From: Cercozoa sp. M6MM
Lineage: Eukaryota; Protista; Endomyxa: Ascetosporea
Length of the DNA: 64,000 bases
NCBI GenBank assembly: GCA_040357565.1
Contig: JBDODJ010000002.1
Reading direction: 5' to 3' (one strand)
In this document: piece after piece, positions 27,868 to 41,088 of the stretch
Layout of the letters: every line of letters begins with the position of its first letter
Position numbering within the stretch: position 1 is the first letter of the stretch
Position numbers and translations under genes: made by a program
Notes under the pieces: generated by a model
Seen by the model: the letters and a program-made list of their open reading frames with translations, nothing else
The model's database searches: none
Told to the model about the DNA's origin: nothing

Positions 27868-27980
27868 CACACACGCTCGCGCACGCACACAAACACGCAC
27901 ACACACACACACACACGCACACACACACGCACACACACACGCACACACACACACACACACGCACACACGCACACACACAG
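27868..27980. repeat. (CA)n microsatellite
   Basis: Direct reading. Confidence 0.95.
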
Positions 27981-28176
27981 GCACGTGCTGCCTGATCTGA
28001 TCGGAAAAAGCGGCCACCTTTTCTGGTTGGTGTTCTGTTTTTCCGGGTTCTGTTTTTTGGTTCGGCCCGGGAATTCCAACGCCCAAACGCTCGTGCTTTA
28101 ACATTAGCAGTATCGCTGAGAGCATAAAGGGACCACTTTATTGCAGGTCAGTTTTGCTTGTTCCTTCAGTCCAAGA

Positions 28177-28523
28177 ATGATGGTATCACCGGCATCGGAC
28201 CATATAACCCTGACCAGCACGGGCTACAAAGGTTTCTCGGCTCAGACGCGTAACTGCCGAAACCTCGGCGCGGAGTCGTATGATCCCTTTTTGCACTTGA
28301 GAGCTGATTTCACTGCCTTTCTTGTGCAGTTTCAAGAAGCAGAAGGGTCAGAAGGGCCCGACGCGAGGCGATGTGCTTATCACTGACATTCTTAAAAACA
28401 AGAGTACCATCGTCGGACTTCAGGACATAGGGCCCGGCGCTGTGGAGCCTTTAAAAGAGGAGTTGGGGCCGGAGTACGAGGTCTTCGAGTCCGCAGAGTT
28501 CGCTCTGAGATCCAAGAAGCACG
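28177..28523 (+). pseudogene. Truncated paralogue (exons 1-2 only) of the permuted EEP gene at 34037-35397
   Basis: MMVSPASDHITLTSTGYKGFSAQTRNCRNLGAES|FKKQKGQKGPTRGDVLITDILKNKSTIVGLQDIGPGAVEPLKEELGPEYEVFESAEFALRSKKHG. Intron positions and phases equal those of the intact copy, and homology stops at the (TG)n array. Confidence 0.75.
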
Positions 28524-28557
28524 GTAAAACAGACACTCACTCCCTGTCTTTTTGTGG

Positions 28558-28613
<56 letters not shown>

Positions 28614-28622
28614 GTGTGTGTG

Positions 28623-28689
<67 letters not shown>

Positions 28690-28713
28690 GTGTGTTTGTG
28701 TGCGTGTGTGTGT
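28558..28713. repeat. (TG)n microsatellite
   Basis: Direct reading. Confidence 0.95.
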
Positions 28714-29284
28714 TTAGGTCAGGAAGGATCTTCGAGCGATTTCGCGCCGGAACGCAGAGGAGGGAAAGCAGCGATTCGAAGCTGCCAATTAAAGTGAGCA
28801 AGCAGGCAAGATCGACGAGTCGAACTCTCCGTCGCGGTGGACATGCCGACCAACCCAGCACAGCTTGCGACTTCAAGAGCATCAAACGATGCAATGCCGG
28901 CTGAGGATGTGACCAACTACTTTACTGACTTCGATGGACTGGATTTCGAGCTCGAAAGCGCTTTGCGGACAGTGAGATGGAAAATGAGGACGAGAACGCA
29001 GATCTTCCTGTTGGCGAGTATTAGGACGGTTACGGCAACCTGAAATAGAAATCTGTAAATTAATCGTATTTTAGTGGTCTTTAGGTCTATTCTAAGACAA
29101 TATACTGTAGGAAAATTTGGTACTATTCTAGTACAAAACCTCAAATTTTTTAAAAATAAGGAAATTCAGCAAAACGTAACACATTAATTGTAATAGTAGA
29201 GGGCGATTTCGGCTTATAGTCGCTGCCCCTGCCAGCAGTCATCCTTCGGCAAGATTGTACCATAGCGCGTGTGTGATCTACATC

Positions 29285-33422: not shown

Positions 33423-33920
33423 TCCGACGCCGCTGTGGCTAACAAACAACCATACAGGAGGTGTGAGTGCTTTTTTCAGGAAACTTTATCGCTTCTAGAT
33501 ATGTGTGCGTGGTGTGTGTGCATGTGTGTGCGTGTGTGCGTGTGTGTTGACAGATGCCACACGACAGAGCATTTGGTTGGTTGATATTAAACCATTGTGA
33601 GTGAGTAGTGCGTCAGTTGCTGGACTAGTAGACGTCGAGCATCCCCCCCCCCGCAGCTGCTAGACTATGACTGGTCCACGTGCGTGAATTAGCGTTGCTA
33701 GCAACGGAATTTATAGCTGTCGAGCCACAATGCGTTGCGTTGGTTTTGCTTCGCGCCAGCGTTCGAATCTGAAATTTGACGCTCAAGCTCGCTGTGACTG
33801 CGACGCCTCCCTTTCTTTTGGATTTTGGGTGAAGTGTCGAGTCTCACATATACACACACGCTCACAGGCACGTGCACAAGTTTGCCCAGGCTGCGTGAGG
33901 TGATCGAAAAACGGTGGCCA

Positions 33921-33968
33921 CCCTTCTGGTTCCAACGTTCTAGCGCTTGTGAGTCGGAACCAGAAGGG
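33921..33968. promoter_or_regulatory. Perfect 13-bp inverted repeat (CCCTTCTGGTTCC / GGAACCAGAAGGG, 22-nt loop) ~70 nt upstream of the EEP start codon
   Basis: Arms at 33921-33933 and 33956-33968 are exact reverse complements. Confidence 0.6.
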
Positions 33969-34036
33969 CCAGGAAATCCAACGCCCTAAACGCTTGTGAT
34001 TTGCATTAGCTAAGCACAAAGGTATTGAGCACAACA

Positions 34037-35397
34037 ATGGAATCGTTCGTTTCGGACCACCTCTCCGTGAGCGCCACAGTCGAAGATTTCTCGGTTTGCA
34101 CGCGTAACGTCCGAATCCTCGGTTGTAAATCGTACGATTCCTTTTGCACGAGATAATTGGACCTGAGGGATGTTTCCTTCTGTGCAGCTTTGAGAAGCAG
34201 AAGGGCCAGAAGGGTCCGACCCGAGGCGAGGTCATCGCCAACGACATTTTCCAAAGTGGAAATGTCTTGGACGCCATTTTGGAGGTCAAGCCGGGCGCTG
34301 TAAAGAAGCTGGAAAAGGCTTTGGGGCCAAAGTATAGGCTCTTCGCGTCCTCGAACTTCTTTCTGAAATCCAAGAAGCACGGTAGAAACAGACAGTCACT
34401 CTCCTGTCTCTTTGTGTAGCCATTGCTACTTTAATGTTGCAACATTCTGCAGGCGAGGTCGTCGTTCTCGTGGTGAAAACAGAAAATCTCAAGAAAGTCT
34501 ATTGCATGGAGAGCATCTGGCCTTGCTCTAACCGACGAGGTGCTCTGTGCCTGGTGCTCGATCTGCGCCTTCGTGGAGGCACCAAACGAATCGCAGTGCT
34601 TGCGACGCACATCACCCATGGCGGCAACAAAACCGCCACACGAGCAGCGCGGACAGACGACATACGAAGTTTGATCAAGCAGTTTCTCGGAATTGTCAAA
34701 AAGGTCAGCTGACAGTTGGGAGGCGGAGAAATGCTGTTCGTACTCTCACAGTGACTCAACTTATGTTGCAGCATAAGGCCGACGGATGGGTCTCCATGGG
34801 AGACTGGAACGTCAACATGAACGCGGACGACAACCGCAAGGTATGACCAACAGGCGATCTGTTTTCTGTTTTAGATTCGCTGCTGTTGCACAGACACTGG
34901 AGAAACGGTTCAAGGCCGTGTCGGCACTTCAAGCCACGCACGGCGGGACGACGTTGTCGTCGACGAGTGCGTCGGCCACACCAACTGAGAGGCAGTATGA
35001 TGCCATCTTTTTCGGTGGCTGCCTGAATAAGGAAAACATCAAGGCCAAGGTGAAGCTACCACCTACGTACAACGCTCCTCCGTCCAAGTCTCGCAAGTTC
35101 AAGGACGTTGACCTCGTCAACCTGGGTGATCTGCCGAGCGGACTCACCAAGCTGCTTGAGCCAGACTTCTACCACAAGAACACCAAGCCGCCGCTCGTCG
35201 CCAAGCTGCTGAACTGCTCAGAATGCTTCAAAGATGGCTATTTCAGCTTCTCTAAGGTGCGACTTTGTGCAGGTTTGGTTTCTCTACCTGGGTCATCGTG
35301 TGTTTTACAGCTCCAAGATGCTCCTGGAATCGGCGCCAAGACCGCTGAGGACGCGTACCGCGCACTATGCAGGCTGGGACTAATAGTAGACTACTGA
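34037..35397 (+). CDS. Circularly permuted endonuclease/exonuclease/phosphatase (EEP) domain plus C-terminal ComEA-like helix-hairpin-helix; 6 exons
   Basis: Introns at 34132-34187, 34382-34452, 34704-34771, 34841-34893 and ~35257-35310. Motifs in order: SDHLSV (aa 6-11), FSVCTRNV, DAILEV, GEVVVLV, VLATHI, VSMGDWN, GTT, QYDAIFF, then FSFSKLQDAPGIGAKTAEDA. Confidence 0.85.
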
Positions 35398-35544
35398 GTT
35401 ACCATTAATTCGCATTGTTTTTAAGTTTTACTCCCAACTCGACTGACGTTTCTTCGCTGGCTTCAATCGACTGATCACTGGCTTTGCGGATAACTAGATA
35501 ACTTGCGTCACGCCTCAAACACATGGCCGTAGTCCCCGCCCGCT

Positions 35545-36332: not shown

Positions 36333-36622
36333 TTTTTGGCACGACGTTGTCTGGGAGTCGGCATCCAAGCGCCGGCGTAGCACTCCAGCAGGGCGGCGAC
36401 GGCGGCGGATGCGATGACTCTTGCCGTGCGTCCCGTCCAGCGGGGTGAGTCACATCGTGCCCATCTGCTCTAGCGCTTTCGTGTATGCACACGTCTGAGT
36501 ATCTTATTGGGTCTCAACTCGGTCAAAAAACTCTCTAAACTGTACGATACTTCGAGGTACCCTATCATGTCGCGTTTGCGGTTTCGGTTGCGTTCACACG
36601 ATGTTGGTTCCCGTACGTCAGG

Positions 36623-37339
36623 TTAGTAGATGCGCGCCACGACAAAACCGCCGAGTCGCAGACGACGCGCGTCAATTGCCGACATGACGCCTTTTTGCGT
36701 GCTGACGATCTGCCGCACACACAGTCGTGCACACAAAAATATCGAGGGGCAGAGTGGGTACCTCGAGGCCGAGACCGGCCTTGTATGAGCGGAAGGTGAA
36801 CCACTTGCCCCACATGCGACCGTGCGTCGGGCCGATCGTGCCGCGCTGGTAGCGTCGCGATGCCTTGCCCACCGTCTGCAGGAGAGAGGTACAGAAGAAA
36901 GTACTTCTGTGAGACGGGGGGGGGGGACAAGCCTACCTGGACCTCTGAGAGCACAGGCTTGTTGTTGTCGTGGTACTTAAGGTTGACTCGGAAGTGCTGA
37001 CCCTCGCGGTGATACGTGCCGACGAAACCTTCTTCGTGCAGCAGCTCCAGCAAGTTGTCGCGCAGGTTGCTTGCACGCAGCATCACGTGCGCGCGACCGC
37101 GCTGCGAGCCCATCTTCAACTATGCACACAGACAGTCATATTAGCCACTCAATCCTCACTTTGTATGCTAACCTGATTCAAGGCGCCCAGCATGTCCTTG
37201 GACCGCGGCTATTTAGCACAAAGTCAACCCTAAATTCAGCAATGAACCAGTTTCCACAAATGCACGCTACGGCTGATGCCGACATGAACGACCGCATGCC
37301 GAGTCCGCCGAAACTGGCGTTCATCGCGGCACGCAGCAT
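36623..37339 (-). CDS. rps8: Nucleus-encoded mitochondrial ribosomal protein uS8m with N-terminal presequence
   Basis: MLRAAMNASFGGLGMRSFMSASA|PRSKDMLGALNQ|LKMG...ASNLRDNLLELLHEEGFV...VNLKYHDNNKPVL...GLGLE|IVSTQKGVMSAIDARRLRLGGFVVARIY*. Confidence 0.88.
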
Positions 37340-38840: not shown

Positions 38841-41088
38841 GCACACACACACACACACAAATGCACATGCACTCTCGCGTGCACGTTTCTGCTGAAATGT
38901 TGGTTGCTGATGTTTTACCTGCGAGTGTGCTGCAGGACGGCTTCGATCTCGATCTGACCTACGTGACCGAGCAAATCATTGCCATGGGTTTCCCGGCTGA
39001 TTCGCTTGAGGGTAGCCTGCCTACCTTATGATGTGTGTGTATGCTTGCTTTCGGTATGTGTGCGCCGTGTGCGACAGGACTGTACCGAAACAACTTCCGC
39101 GACGTGCAGCGCTTCTTTGGATCGCGTCACTGCTCCGCCGACGGCACGCCGCACTACCGCGTGTACAACCTGTGCAGCGAGCGCGACTATCCGGACAAGT
39201 AGAGTTTTGCCTCTTCAACTCCCTCTGTTGCCTTCTGATATCCTTACGTTGCTGCAGTCGCTTCGAAGGACGCGTCATGCGCTTCCCGTTCGACGATCAC
39301 AACCCGTGTCCATTCAAGATGCTGCCACTATTCTGCCGCGACGTCTACCAATGTACACGCAAACGTGCTTGTTTTTGGCACGAAAGCGGTTAGATACTAC
39401 ACATTATCTTTGCGACAGGGTGCTCGCGCGATCGCGACAACGTCGCCGCCATTCACTGCAAGGGTGCGTCTCCCTGTGCTATGTCTCTTGTCGCGCCTTC
39501 TGTTTATGTCTGTCTGTGCAGCTGGCAAGGGCCGCACGGGTCTCATGATCACTTGCTACCTGCAATACGAAGGTTTGGCCTCGACGCCGCAGGAGGCACT
39601 CGAGTACGACTGGCTTTCCTATGCATGCGAGACCTTCCGTCCGTTTGGACTAATGACATGTGTCATAGGTACTACGCCCAGATGCGCACGCAGGACGGGT
39701 ACTCAGTTTTCGTTGTGTGTGTCTGTGTGTGTGTTTGTACGTGACTGTGCCCGCAGGCAAGGCGTGACGATTCCGTCGCAGCGACGCTACACGCACTACT
39801 TTGGCACCTTCTTGCGACGCGAGCGCGAGCGACTGTTCCATTTCTATTTTTCTGTATCGCTGTACTCCTTTATTCTTGTGACTCACAGAGGATTGCCAGC
39901 GGATGCAGTTGTGCCGCTCGACGACATCGAGAGCAATGCGCGCAGTGAACCGATCGTTGGCGCCTCCAACATCCGTTTGCTGAAGCGTGTTTTCGTAGCC
40001 TTTGCTCTGATGAATTTGCTGAAGTGTTGGGACATGTGTGCTCCATGCTCGCGTCACTGTGCAGATCCGCCACATGGATCTTAAGGGCGGCGAGTGCAGC
40101 TTCCGACTGCGCATCGGCAACCGCAAGTTCAGTTCCAAGGTGCACAGCGACAAGTACACGCAGGTGGAGGCGACTCACTCGCACAGCTACGAGTGCGGCA
40201 ATAAGGTGCGCGCGTTTTTCTGCAAGGTGCTCATTTGCTTGGCTTGAGACTGTTCCCGGTTTCTTGTAGATTCCGCTGCCCGACGAGGTCGATGTCAAAT
40301 GTGAAATTTACAAGGAAAAGGCGTTCAACAAGGGTAGAAATTTTCTGTGTTGTGCACACTGATCGCGTGCACGGTGTGTACTTGCGTTGTGTTTGTCGCA
40401 GAGAAGATCTGCCACTTCTGGTTCAACACGGGTTTCTTGGAAGACAACGTAGCATTAATAATTGTCTCTCATTGTTAAGCTGTTCGCATGATGATTGGTT
40501 TTGTGCGTAGAAACTCGTGCTGCAGAAGCTCGAGATCGACAAGCTGCAGTAATGACTTTTCGTTTTCGCCTAATGTGTTTGCCTGGTGATGCGTGTGTGT
40601 ATGTTGGCAGCAAGGACAAGAAGCACAAGCTGTTCCCTGCCGACATGTCGATCGAACTCGAGTTCGAAGACTTCCACTCTGCCTCGGTACAGCGTGCCTG
40701 GTCAGCTGTCAGGTGTGCTCTCTGATTTTTGTCAAACAACACACAGGGCGCCGTGTTGGAAGCTGGCGTACTGTCCGACGATGACACGCGTCCGGGCCAC
40801 TGTCGCGACCCGTCCTGCGGCAGCGGTTTTCTGAGCGATGATGTACGTGTGCTTTTGGGCTACCTCTCCCGATATCCTCTGACACGAGCATATAAACAGG
40901 ATGCGTTCCTGGCGTCGCCGCGAATGCAGGCAGTGGCACAAGAGGTACGCATGGTAGGACACTCGTGTCTCGTCTCTTTCTCTTTGTTTGTCTTGTGTGT
41001 AAGCGTCTTGTGGGTGTACAAACAGGAGTCCGTGCCGTCTCGCTCGCGTCGCGGCGGCTTCTCGCTTGCTGCCACGGAGTCCAAGTGA
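37699..41088 (+). CDS. PTEN: PTEN-family phosphoinositide phosphatase (phosphatase + C2 domains)
   Basis: VSKKKNRFQE|DGFDLDLTYVTEQIIAMGFPA; YRVYNLCSER; FPFDDHNP; AIHCK|AGKGRTG; GVTIPSQRRY; CHFWFNTGF; KDKKHKLFPADMSIEL. Confidence 0.95.

Follow-up and report, generated by a model that had tools for sequence, protein, structure and literature searches.

A six-exon gene occupies positions 34037-35397 (+) of the analysed window, which is the whole 64,000-nt stretch of contig JBDODJ010000002.1 from Cercozoa sp. M6MM. The reading frame opens with an ATG at 34037 and closes with a TGA stop ending at 35397, as an earlier note on this DNA had proposed, and its five introns are all of the GT..AG type with lengths of 54-71 nt. 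The public model of the gene (P0001) is a protein of 352 amino acids, filed as 'MAG: hypothetical protein MHM6MM_000186 [Cercozoa sp. M6MM]' and derived from the metagenome-assembled genome of an unclassified cercozoan. It was retrieved by querying with the long read-through open reading frame (ORF) at 34786-35394. The protein previously spliced by eye agreed with P0001 except at the junction of exons 1 and 2, which reads ...RILGCKS|FEKQ. The coordinates of all features are collected in Table 1.

Table 1. Features of the window gene, its truncated paralogue and the neighbouring reading frames
Feature	Position	Strand	Content
Truncated paralogue, exon 1	28177..28277	+	MMVSPASDH...QTRNCRNLGAES
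Truncated paralogue, exon 2	28330..28523	+	GLQDIG: Asp replaces motif-II Glu
Upstream non-coding stretch	33843..34036	+	blocks common to both window copies (DNA alignment with 27960-28176)
Exon 1	34037..34131	+	residues 1-31 and two bases of the Ser32 codon
Exon 2	34188..34381	+	motif-II Glu64 (DAILEV), helices, strand YRLFA
Exon 3	34453..34703	+	HGEVVVLV, RRGAL, IAVLATH149 strand; H149 is the equivalent of DNase I H134
Exon 4	34772..34840	+	catalytic Asp/Asn motif GD191-W-N193
Exon 5	34894..35256	+	HGGTT (T222/223), YD239AIFF, penultimate strand KAKVKL (253-258), ~60-residue basic linker
Exon 6	35311..35397	+	helix-hairpin-helix motif LQDAPGIGAKTAEDAY, then stop codon
Ribosomal S8 ORF	36568..37119	-	Ribosomal_S8 match, E 1.2e-6
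PTP-like ORF	39365..40081	+	weak dual-specificity/PTP phosphatase match PF22784, E 1.2e-4

Transcription of the window gene and splicing of intron 3 follow from a 209-nt contig of the RNA-type run X2, which joins exon 3 to exon 4 (junction 34703|34772, at GT..AG); the RNA type of this run is a guess, and its support confirms intron 3 only and covers exons 3-4 only. The spliced contig (window 34549-34825) is 100% identical, yet the run carries another organism code and another study than the source of the DNA. In the sample of that run, the organism itself or else its RNA is present.

Ahead of the ATG, its frame is closed by a TAG 30 nt away (34007-34009). The non-coding blocks that adjoin the ATG are probably a promoter or 5'UTR and, when the genome was searched, they did not behave as a dispersed repeat. 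No coding potential, EEP-like ORF or [ST]DH was found in the 4 kb upstream of the ATG, which hold microsatellite and gap sequence. Inside the conserved blocks, ~70-115 nt before the ATG, a ~48-nt inverted repeat (hairpin) was observed at about 33921-33968; the only other genome match of this stretch was its own inverted match.

The neighbouring reading frames are ordinary cellular ones. The match of the S8 frame extends over profile positions 13-72 only, a coverage which agrees with the rps8-like gene with an insertion noted earlier. The suggestion of a 'defence or mobile nuclease' found no support, in view of the S8 and PTP-like neighbours and of the upstream cassette, which is unique in the genome; the surroundings gave no sign of a mobile element or defence island.

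Copies of the gene and their distribution

The family consists of three loci in the genome, namely the window gene, the copy at 28177 and a divergent gene of about 36% identity that is distributed over contigs C1077 (P0003, exons 1-3) and C516 (P0004, exons 5-6). The copy at 28177 ends after exon 2, before a (TG)n array starting at ~28557, and its two exons are 50% identical to the window gene (exon 2 at E 1.9e-16). In the divergent gene, introns 1 and 2 have the same positions. Exon 3 of the window gene matched P0003 at E 3e-9, and exon 5 matched the paralogue on C516 at E 3e-4. The exon-5 translation from C516 overlaps the record P0004, and the two were merged.

Long (TG)n/(CA)n arrays were seen within or just after introns of every family copy (window 28524-28720; C1077, C516). 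These arrays break the assembly between C1077 and C516, and the GDWN exon of the divergent gene therefore falls into the gap.

A phmmer search with P0001 against 1.84 billion representative proteins returned three proteins only, all from its own genome, and a family profile run against 5.8 billion proteins likewise stayed within that genome, adding a fourth fragment. No relative was found among the JGI metagenome contigs, and tblastn against plasmids and phages gave chance matches only (E of at least 2). Since the family was met in one metagenome-assembled genome only, its conservation is that of three paralogues, one of them truncated and pseudogene-like and one split.

The DNase I-like core and its catalytic motifs

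Few hydrolases are as well studied as the EEP (DNase I-like) enzymes, which include DNase I, APE1, TDP2, L1 endonuclease, CCR4, the sphingomyelinases and the inositol 5-phosphatases. Residues 62-245 of P0001 aligned to positions 36-204/225 of the Pfam profile Exo_endo_phos (PF03372) with E 0.0024, and residues 30-110 of P0003 to positions 1-61. Both scores (18.1 bits for P0001, 12.5 bits for P0003) miss the gathering threshold of 24.5 bits. P0001 misses the threshold of every family and is publicly labelled 'hypothetical', a case that calls for caution in annotation. When Pfam was searched exon by exon, matches were obtained on the HhH exon only. NCBIfam gave only a weak match to the MnuA nuclease, starting at P0003 residue 29.

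A profile search of the PDB with the family had as its best match the Bacteroides EEP 3mpr (E 1.3), and hhalign of the family against the E. coli YbhP family reached E 0.37-0.4. In a sequence search of the PDB, P0001 alone returned chance matches and exon 1 alone returned nothing. The uncharacterised bacterial EEPs (E. coli YbhP; PDB 3mpr, 3l1w, 3g6s) come nearest to P0001 by the general feel of the sequence, at the level of non-significant matches. Alignment to YbhP with hhalign and MAFFT paired LEV with LQEV, HGEVVVLV with HHGNAVLS, RRGAL with KRGVL, ATH with CVH and GDWN with GDFN. The motif containing Glu64 was placed consistently, as 'lev' on 'QEC' of 3mpr in the profile alignment and as LEV on LQEV of YbhP in hhalign.

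The sequence matches are weak though consistent; the predicted structures point clearly to the EEP fold. The ESM Atlas model of P0001 (pTM 0.69) matched five EEP clusters with TM 0.52-0.59 over residues ~16-266, and its feature matches were EEPs of Bacillota and Bacteroidota. The AF2 model was computed from a 4-row alignment of the family; homologues of YbhP were not added to it as padding, since MAFFT placed the N-terminal strand and the YD motif wrongly when they were included. Its mean pLDDT is 47.8, it is usable only at residues 10-110, and the pLDDT is below 50 at residues 1-9 and 183-311. Foldseek on the AF2 model returned almost only EEP chains among the matches listed, including DNase I, DNase1L3, 3mpr, L1 endonuclease and TDP2 (E 9e-4). 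The structural neighbours are led by DNase I and TDP2, with nocturnin, CNOT6L, PDE12, ANGEL2, neutral sphingomyelinase and mannosyl-6-phosphatase tied within ~1.5 Z. The model has the four-layer alpha/beta sandwich of the fold, and the core of P0001 almost certainly belongs to the EEP fold.

The motifs of P0001 are SDH at 6-8, TRN at 22-24, ILEV at 62-65, ATHITH at 147-152, GDWN at 190-193, HGGTT at 219-223, YDAIF at 238-242 and PGIG at 329-332. The catalytic residues occur in the order that had been read from the letters alone (D7-H8, N24, E64, H149, D191/N193, T222/223, D239). The full catalytic set of an EEP enzyme is thus present (N24, E64, H149, D191/N193, D239 and D7/H8), and its positions are kept in P0003 and P0004 wherever their sequence can be read. 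The order departs from the canonical one, in which the Asp-His strand is the last of the domain.

That no SDH follows the last Asp motif held up on inspection: the [ST]DH at the N-terminus is the only one in P0001, and the plus-strand frames over the span of the window gene contain no other. Downstream of D239 there is one further strand, KAKVKL at 253-258, followed by PPTYN at the place where SDH would be expected. The only His after D239 in P0001 is H297, which is not conserved in P0004, and no [ST]DH or conserved His was found in the remainder of either paralogue after D239. No SDH was found in any plus-strand frame of contig C516. Beyond the window gene, the frame ...LQSTDHWLCG* was observed 73 nt past the stop codon (35470-35500, +); its TDH is followed four codons later by a stop, it looks like a chance occurrence, and it has no counterpart in C516.

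The N-terminal Asp-His strand

Exon 1 encodes the initial Met and S6-D7-H8, after which a turn of two residues joins strands at 9-15 and 18-23; the second strand leads to the motif-I Asn24. The same start was found at all three loci: Met, 4-12 variable residues, SDH, an alternating strand, a turn, strand 1 and Asn. P0003 begins MTLISKPLISKPVSDH...GTWNVRN, and the copy at 28177 retains MMVSPASDH...QTRN, as the earlier note had pointed out. His and the motif-I Asn are 15-16 residues apart at three of three loci, and within the N-terminus, which varies elsewhere, SDH alone is invariant. The description of the N-terminal SDH as a trait of the family was therefore borne out, with one of the three loci only ~36% identical.

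The SDH lies outside the domain as it is usually delimited. VIA-align placed model residues 18..201 on residues 1..201 of DNase I, that is, DNase I residue 1 corresponds to residue 18, which puts SDH ahead of the canonical first strand. In P0003, SDH (14-16) likewise precedes both position 1 of the Pfam profile (residue 30) and the start of the MnuA match (residue 29).

Likeness of this peptide to the canonical C-terminal strand was assessed in several ways. The sole hhalign match between the family and E. coli YbhP joined residues 5-14 (VSDHLSVSAT) to YbhP 241-250/253 (LSDHAPLSAE) with E 0.4. In a scan with the SDH-strand motif from the C-terminus of the YbhP family, the N-terminal 11-mer was the top-scoring position of P0001 and also of P0003, and its score was reached by 1/58,472 (P0001) and 5/58,472 (P0003) background windows. 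Greedy hhalign of the P0001 core (18-260) covered YbhP 10-235 only. For an in-silico un-permutation, residues 4-17 were moved behind residue 262. By hhalign, the un-permuted P0001 gained no score over shuffled-segment controls, the profiles being too thin (Neff 1.4 vs 2.3), and the YbhP-family HMM, which does not detect P0001, gave negative scores in this test; neither outcome counts for or against a permutation.

Bovine DNase I has eight residues beyond H252 at its C-terminal end and six before N7 at its N-terminal end. If these ends were joined head to tail, 14 residues would separate His from Asn; in P0001 the distance is 15. The AF2 secondary structure of P0001 has strands at 10-15 and 18-28 with two residues between them. 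As modelled, the two strands may form a hairpin, in which residue 8 would face residues 24/25. Because the AF2 model is weak at the decisive residues, we infer the position of His8 from the geometry of this hairpin.

The closest known EEP enzymes carry the SDH strand at the other end. In DNase I and DNase1L3 (PDB 2dnj, 4awn, 7kiu), the SDH strand makes up the last 11 residues, whereas in P0001 it precedes strand 1; P0001 also differs from them in having no signal peptide, in its identity of ~15% and in its additional C-terminal linker and HhH. TDP2 (PDB 5j3s, 4gz2) is canonical in its order: the SDH-type His is C-terminal, a UBA domain stands at the N-terminus, and no sequence relationship between it and P0001 is detectable. 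The bacterial EEPs end with LSDHAPLS..., the element with which the P0001 family begins.

Taken as a candidate on its sequence features, P0001 is rather likely to be a circularly permuted EEP phosphodiesterase. Of the permutation claim made earlier, the EEP fold, the SDH before the start of the domain, the missing C-terminal SDH and the family trait stand, and the descriptions as 'ComEA-like' and as 'defence or mobile' do not. We lean, somewhat less firmly, towards regarding it as the first natural permutant of the EEP/DNase I fold, in which Asp-His would be supplied from the N-terminus via a hairpin with strand 1 and the C-terminus would be free for an HhH anchor. A limited full-text search of the literature found no description of a permuted EEP.

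The probable helix-hairpin-helix tail, proposed mechanism and alternatives

The two genes that can be followed to their 3' end close with a PGIG HhH motif, LQDAPGIGAKTAEDAY in P0001 and LRHIPGIGEKTINDLY in P0004, and have the tail signature hPGIGxKT in common. Exon 6 alone matched Pfam HHH at E 0.023 and HHH_5 at E 0.04. Matches to these two profiles were found in each gene separately and are weak (E 0.02-0.17), their 12-15.7 bits missing the gathering thresholds of PF00633/PF14520 (cut-offs 24-27). The pattern hxxhxGhGxxxA of a hairpin between two helices is present, and the AF2 model of the P0004 tail (pLDDT 54.8) has helices at 55-59 and 66-78 with a loop between them around PGIG. Foldseek on this model returned nothing below E 1.9, with alpha-CTD as a weak match. 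By sequence, the nearest PDB entries of the tail are the RNA polymerase alpha-CTD (1doq, E 0.25) and RuvA. One HhH motif is probably present in the tail.

The tail had been called 'ComEA-like', a name that the searches do not support. The ComEA/(HhH)2 domain (PF12836) has the hPGIGxKTA hairpin signature in common with the P0001 tail, but only one motif is recognisable there, and no PF12836 match was obtained at E up to 10 in P0001, P0003, P0004 or exon 6. A ComEA-type (HhH)2 domain in the tail is thus unsupported, the AF2 model of the tail being too poor to judge its fold; by sequence, alpha-CTD and RuvA are nearer to it. A combination of the two domains is known from EEPD1 (PDB 9yxy, PMC12988330), which has two (HhH)2 domains followed by the EEP domain; P0001 has the reverse order with a single C-terminal HhH motif. 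In PMC12988330, EEPD1 is called unique in the superfamily for its two tandem N-terminal (HhH)2 domains and is described as clamping DNA, its active site being termed a 'pseudo active site'. The EEP domain of EEPD1 is unpermuted and dimeric and has no sequence similarity to P0001, which does not have the EEPD1 architecture of N-terminal tandem (HhH)2 and C-terminal EEP.

In our proposal, the strand which closes the EEP fold, with SDHxPV in DNase I, APE1 and TDP2, now stands at the N-terminus and would pair with canonical strand 1 in a tight beta-hairpin. D7/H8 would then face Asn24 of motif I at the end of the sheet where unpermuted enzymes have this pair, and complete an active site composed of D7, H8, N24, E64, H149, D191, N193 and D239. 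The expected reaction is a metal-dependent cleavage of phosphodiesters like that of two-His enzymes of the DNase I type. Asn24, Glu64 and the metal would hold the scissile phosphate, on which Asp191/His149 would act together with His8, the latter oriented by Asp239. The chain would leave the core after the penultimate strand at ~262 and continue through the basic linker into the single HhH; linker and HhH may tether the enzyme to the backbone of a duplex nucleic acid, most likely DNA, P0001 being basic overall (pI 9.6). The most likely origin would be a tandem duplication and fusion, after which the first copy was reduced to its last strand and the second copy lost its own. The locus itself displays a tandem duplication.

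It is fairly probable that the window gene encodes a divergent, lineage-restricted enzyme, for which we infer the position of His8 in three dimensions, catalysis and a DNA substrate. For DNA as the substrate taken by itself, the chances appear even. The RNA-, lipid- and sugar-phosphate-acting enzymes that are tied within ~1.5 Z among the structural neighbours lend some weight to a different, possible though doubtful reading, that of an active enzyme working on RNA ends (as CCR4, nocturnin and ANGEL), on lipids (as sphingomyelinase) or on sugar/inositol phosphates. The same list of neighbours is headed by DNase I and TDP2, the conserved PGIG HhH is most like the alpha-CTD of RNA polymerase and RuvA, which bind duplex DNA, and the protein is basic, all of which argues against a substrate other than DNA.

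P0001 might also be a degenerate EEP that has lost the last strand with its His, a dead or weak DNA-binding protein in which SDH was kept for stability or regulation. We regard this as unlikely, given that N24, E64, H149, D191/N193 and D239 are kept, the readable ones also in the 36%-identical paralogue, that SDH is invariant with a fixed spacing of 15-16 residues in three copies, and that the SDH peptide resembles the canonical strand far above chance. The low pLDDT at residues 1-9, which covers His8, and the sub-threshold scores of all EEP sequence matches are compatible with such a loss, and a protein with EEP and HhH domains can bind rather than cut, as EEPD1 does (PMC12988330).

A variant of the permutation, in which the SDH arm would complete the active site of the partner subunit in a strand-swapped dimer, is improbable. 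With a turn of just two residues and low model confidence at 1-9, the arm could run either way, and a dimeric EEP has a precedent in EEPD1 (PMC12988330), but the two-residue link between strands 10-15 and 18-28 favours a hairpin within one molecule.

Slightly more improbable still is an incomplete gene model in which SDH would end an EEP segment whose upstream exons were overlooked (tandem or split EEP), as the RNA contig stopping short of exon 1 and the AG dinucleotides that shortly precede the ATG in the window gene and in C1077 (possible acceptors) might allow, since this conflicts with the in-frame TAG 30 nt upstream, with an ATG placed 4-12 codons before SDH at three loci independently, with the 4 kb upstream holding no EEP-like ORF or [ST]DH and with the conserved non-coding blocks adjoining the ATG in both window copies, and since the domain from residue 18 would, even given an upstream domain, still be without a His strand of its own.

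If the permuted arrangement is correct, the first and last strands of the EEP fold can be joined with the active site intact. This could be used in engineering to obtain new termini for fusions, split enzymes and biosensors, and the family would be a worked example of a permutation that enables a new domain fusion. The permuted EEP with its HhH would be a new DNA-processing architecture, so far confined to one cercozoan lineage, and the P0001 family a second, independent combination of EEP and HhH besides EEPD1.

Canonical EEP (PF03372) matches, at least 11 in number, were also observed in open frames of 650-1570 amino acids on other contigs of the genome (C984, C1046, C32, C524, C239, C1023, C163, C9, C5, C25 and C750). 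These frames look like endonuclease-RT ORFs of non-LTR retrotransposons and are unrelated to the window gene.
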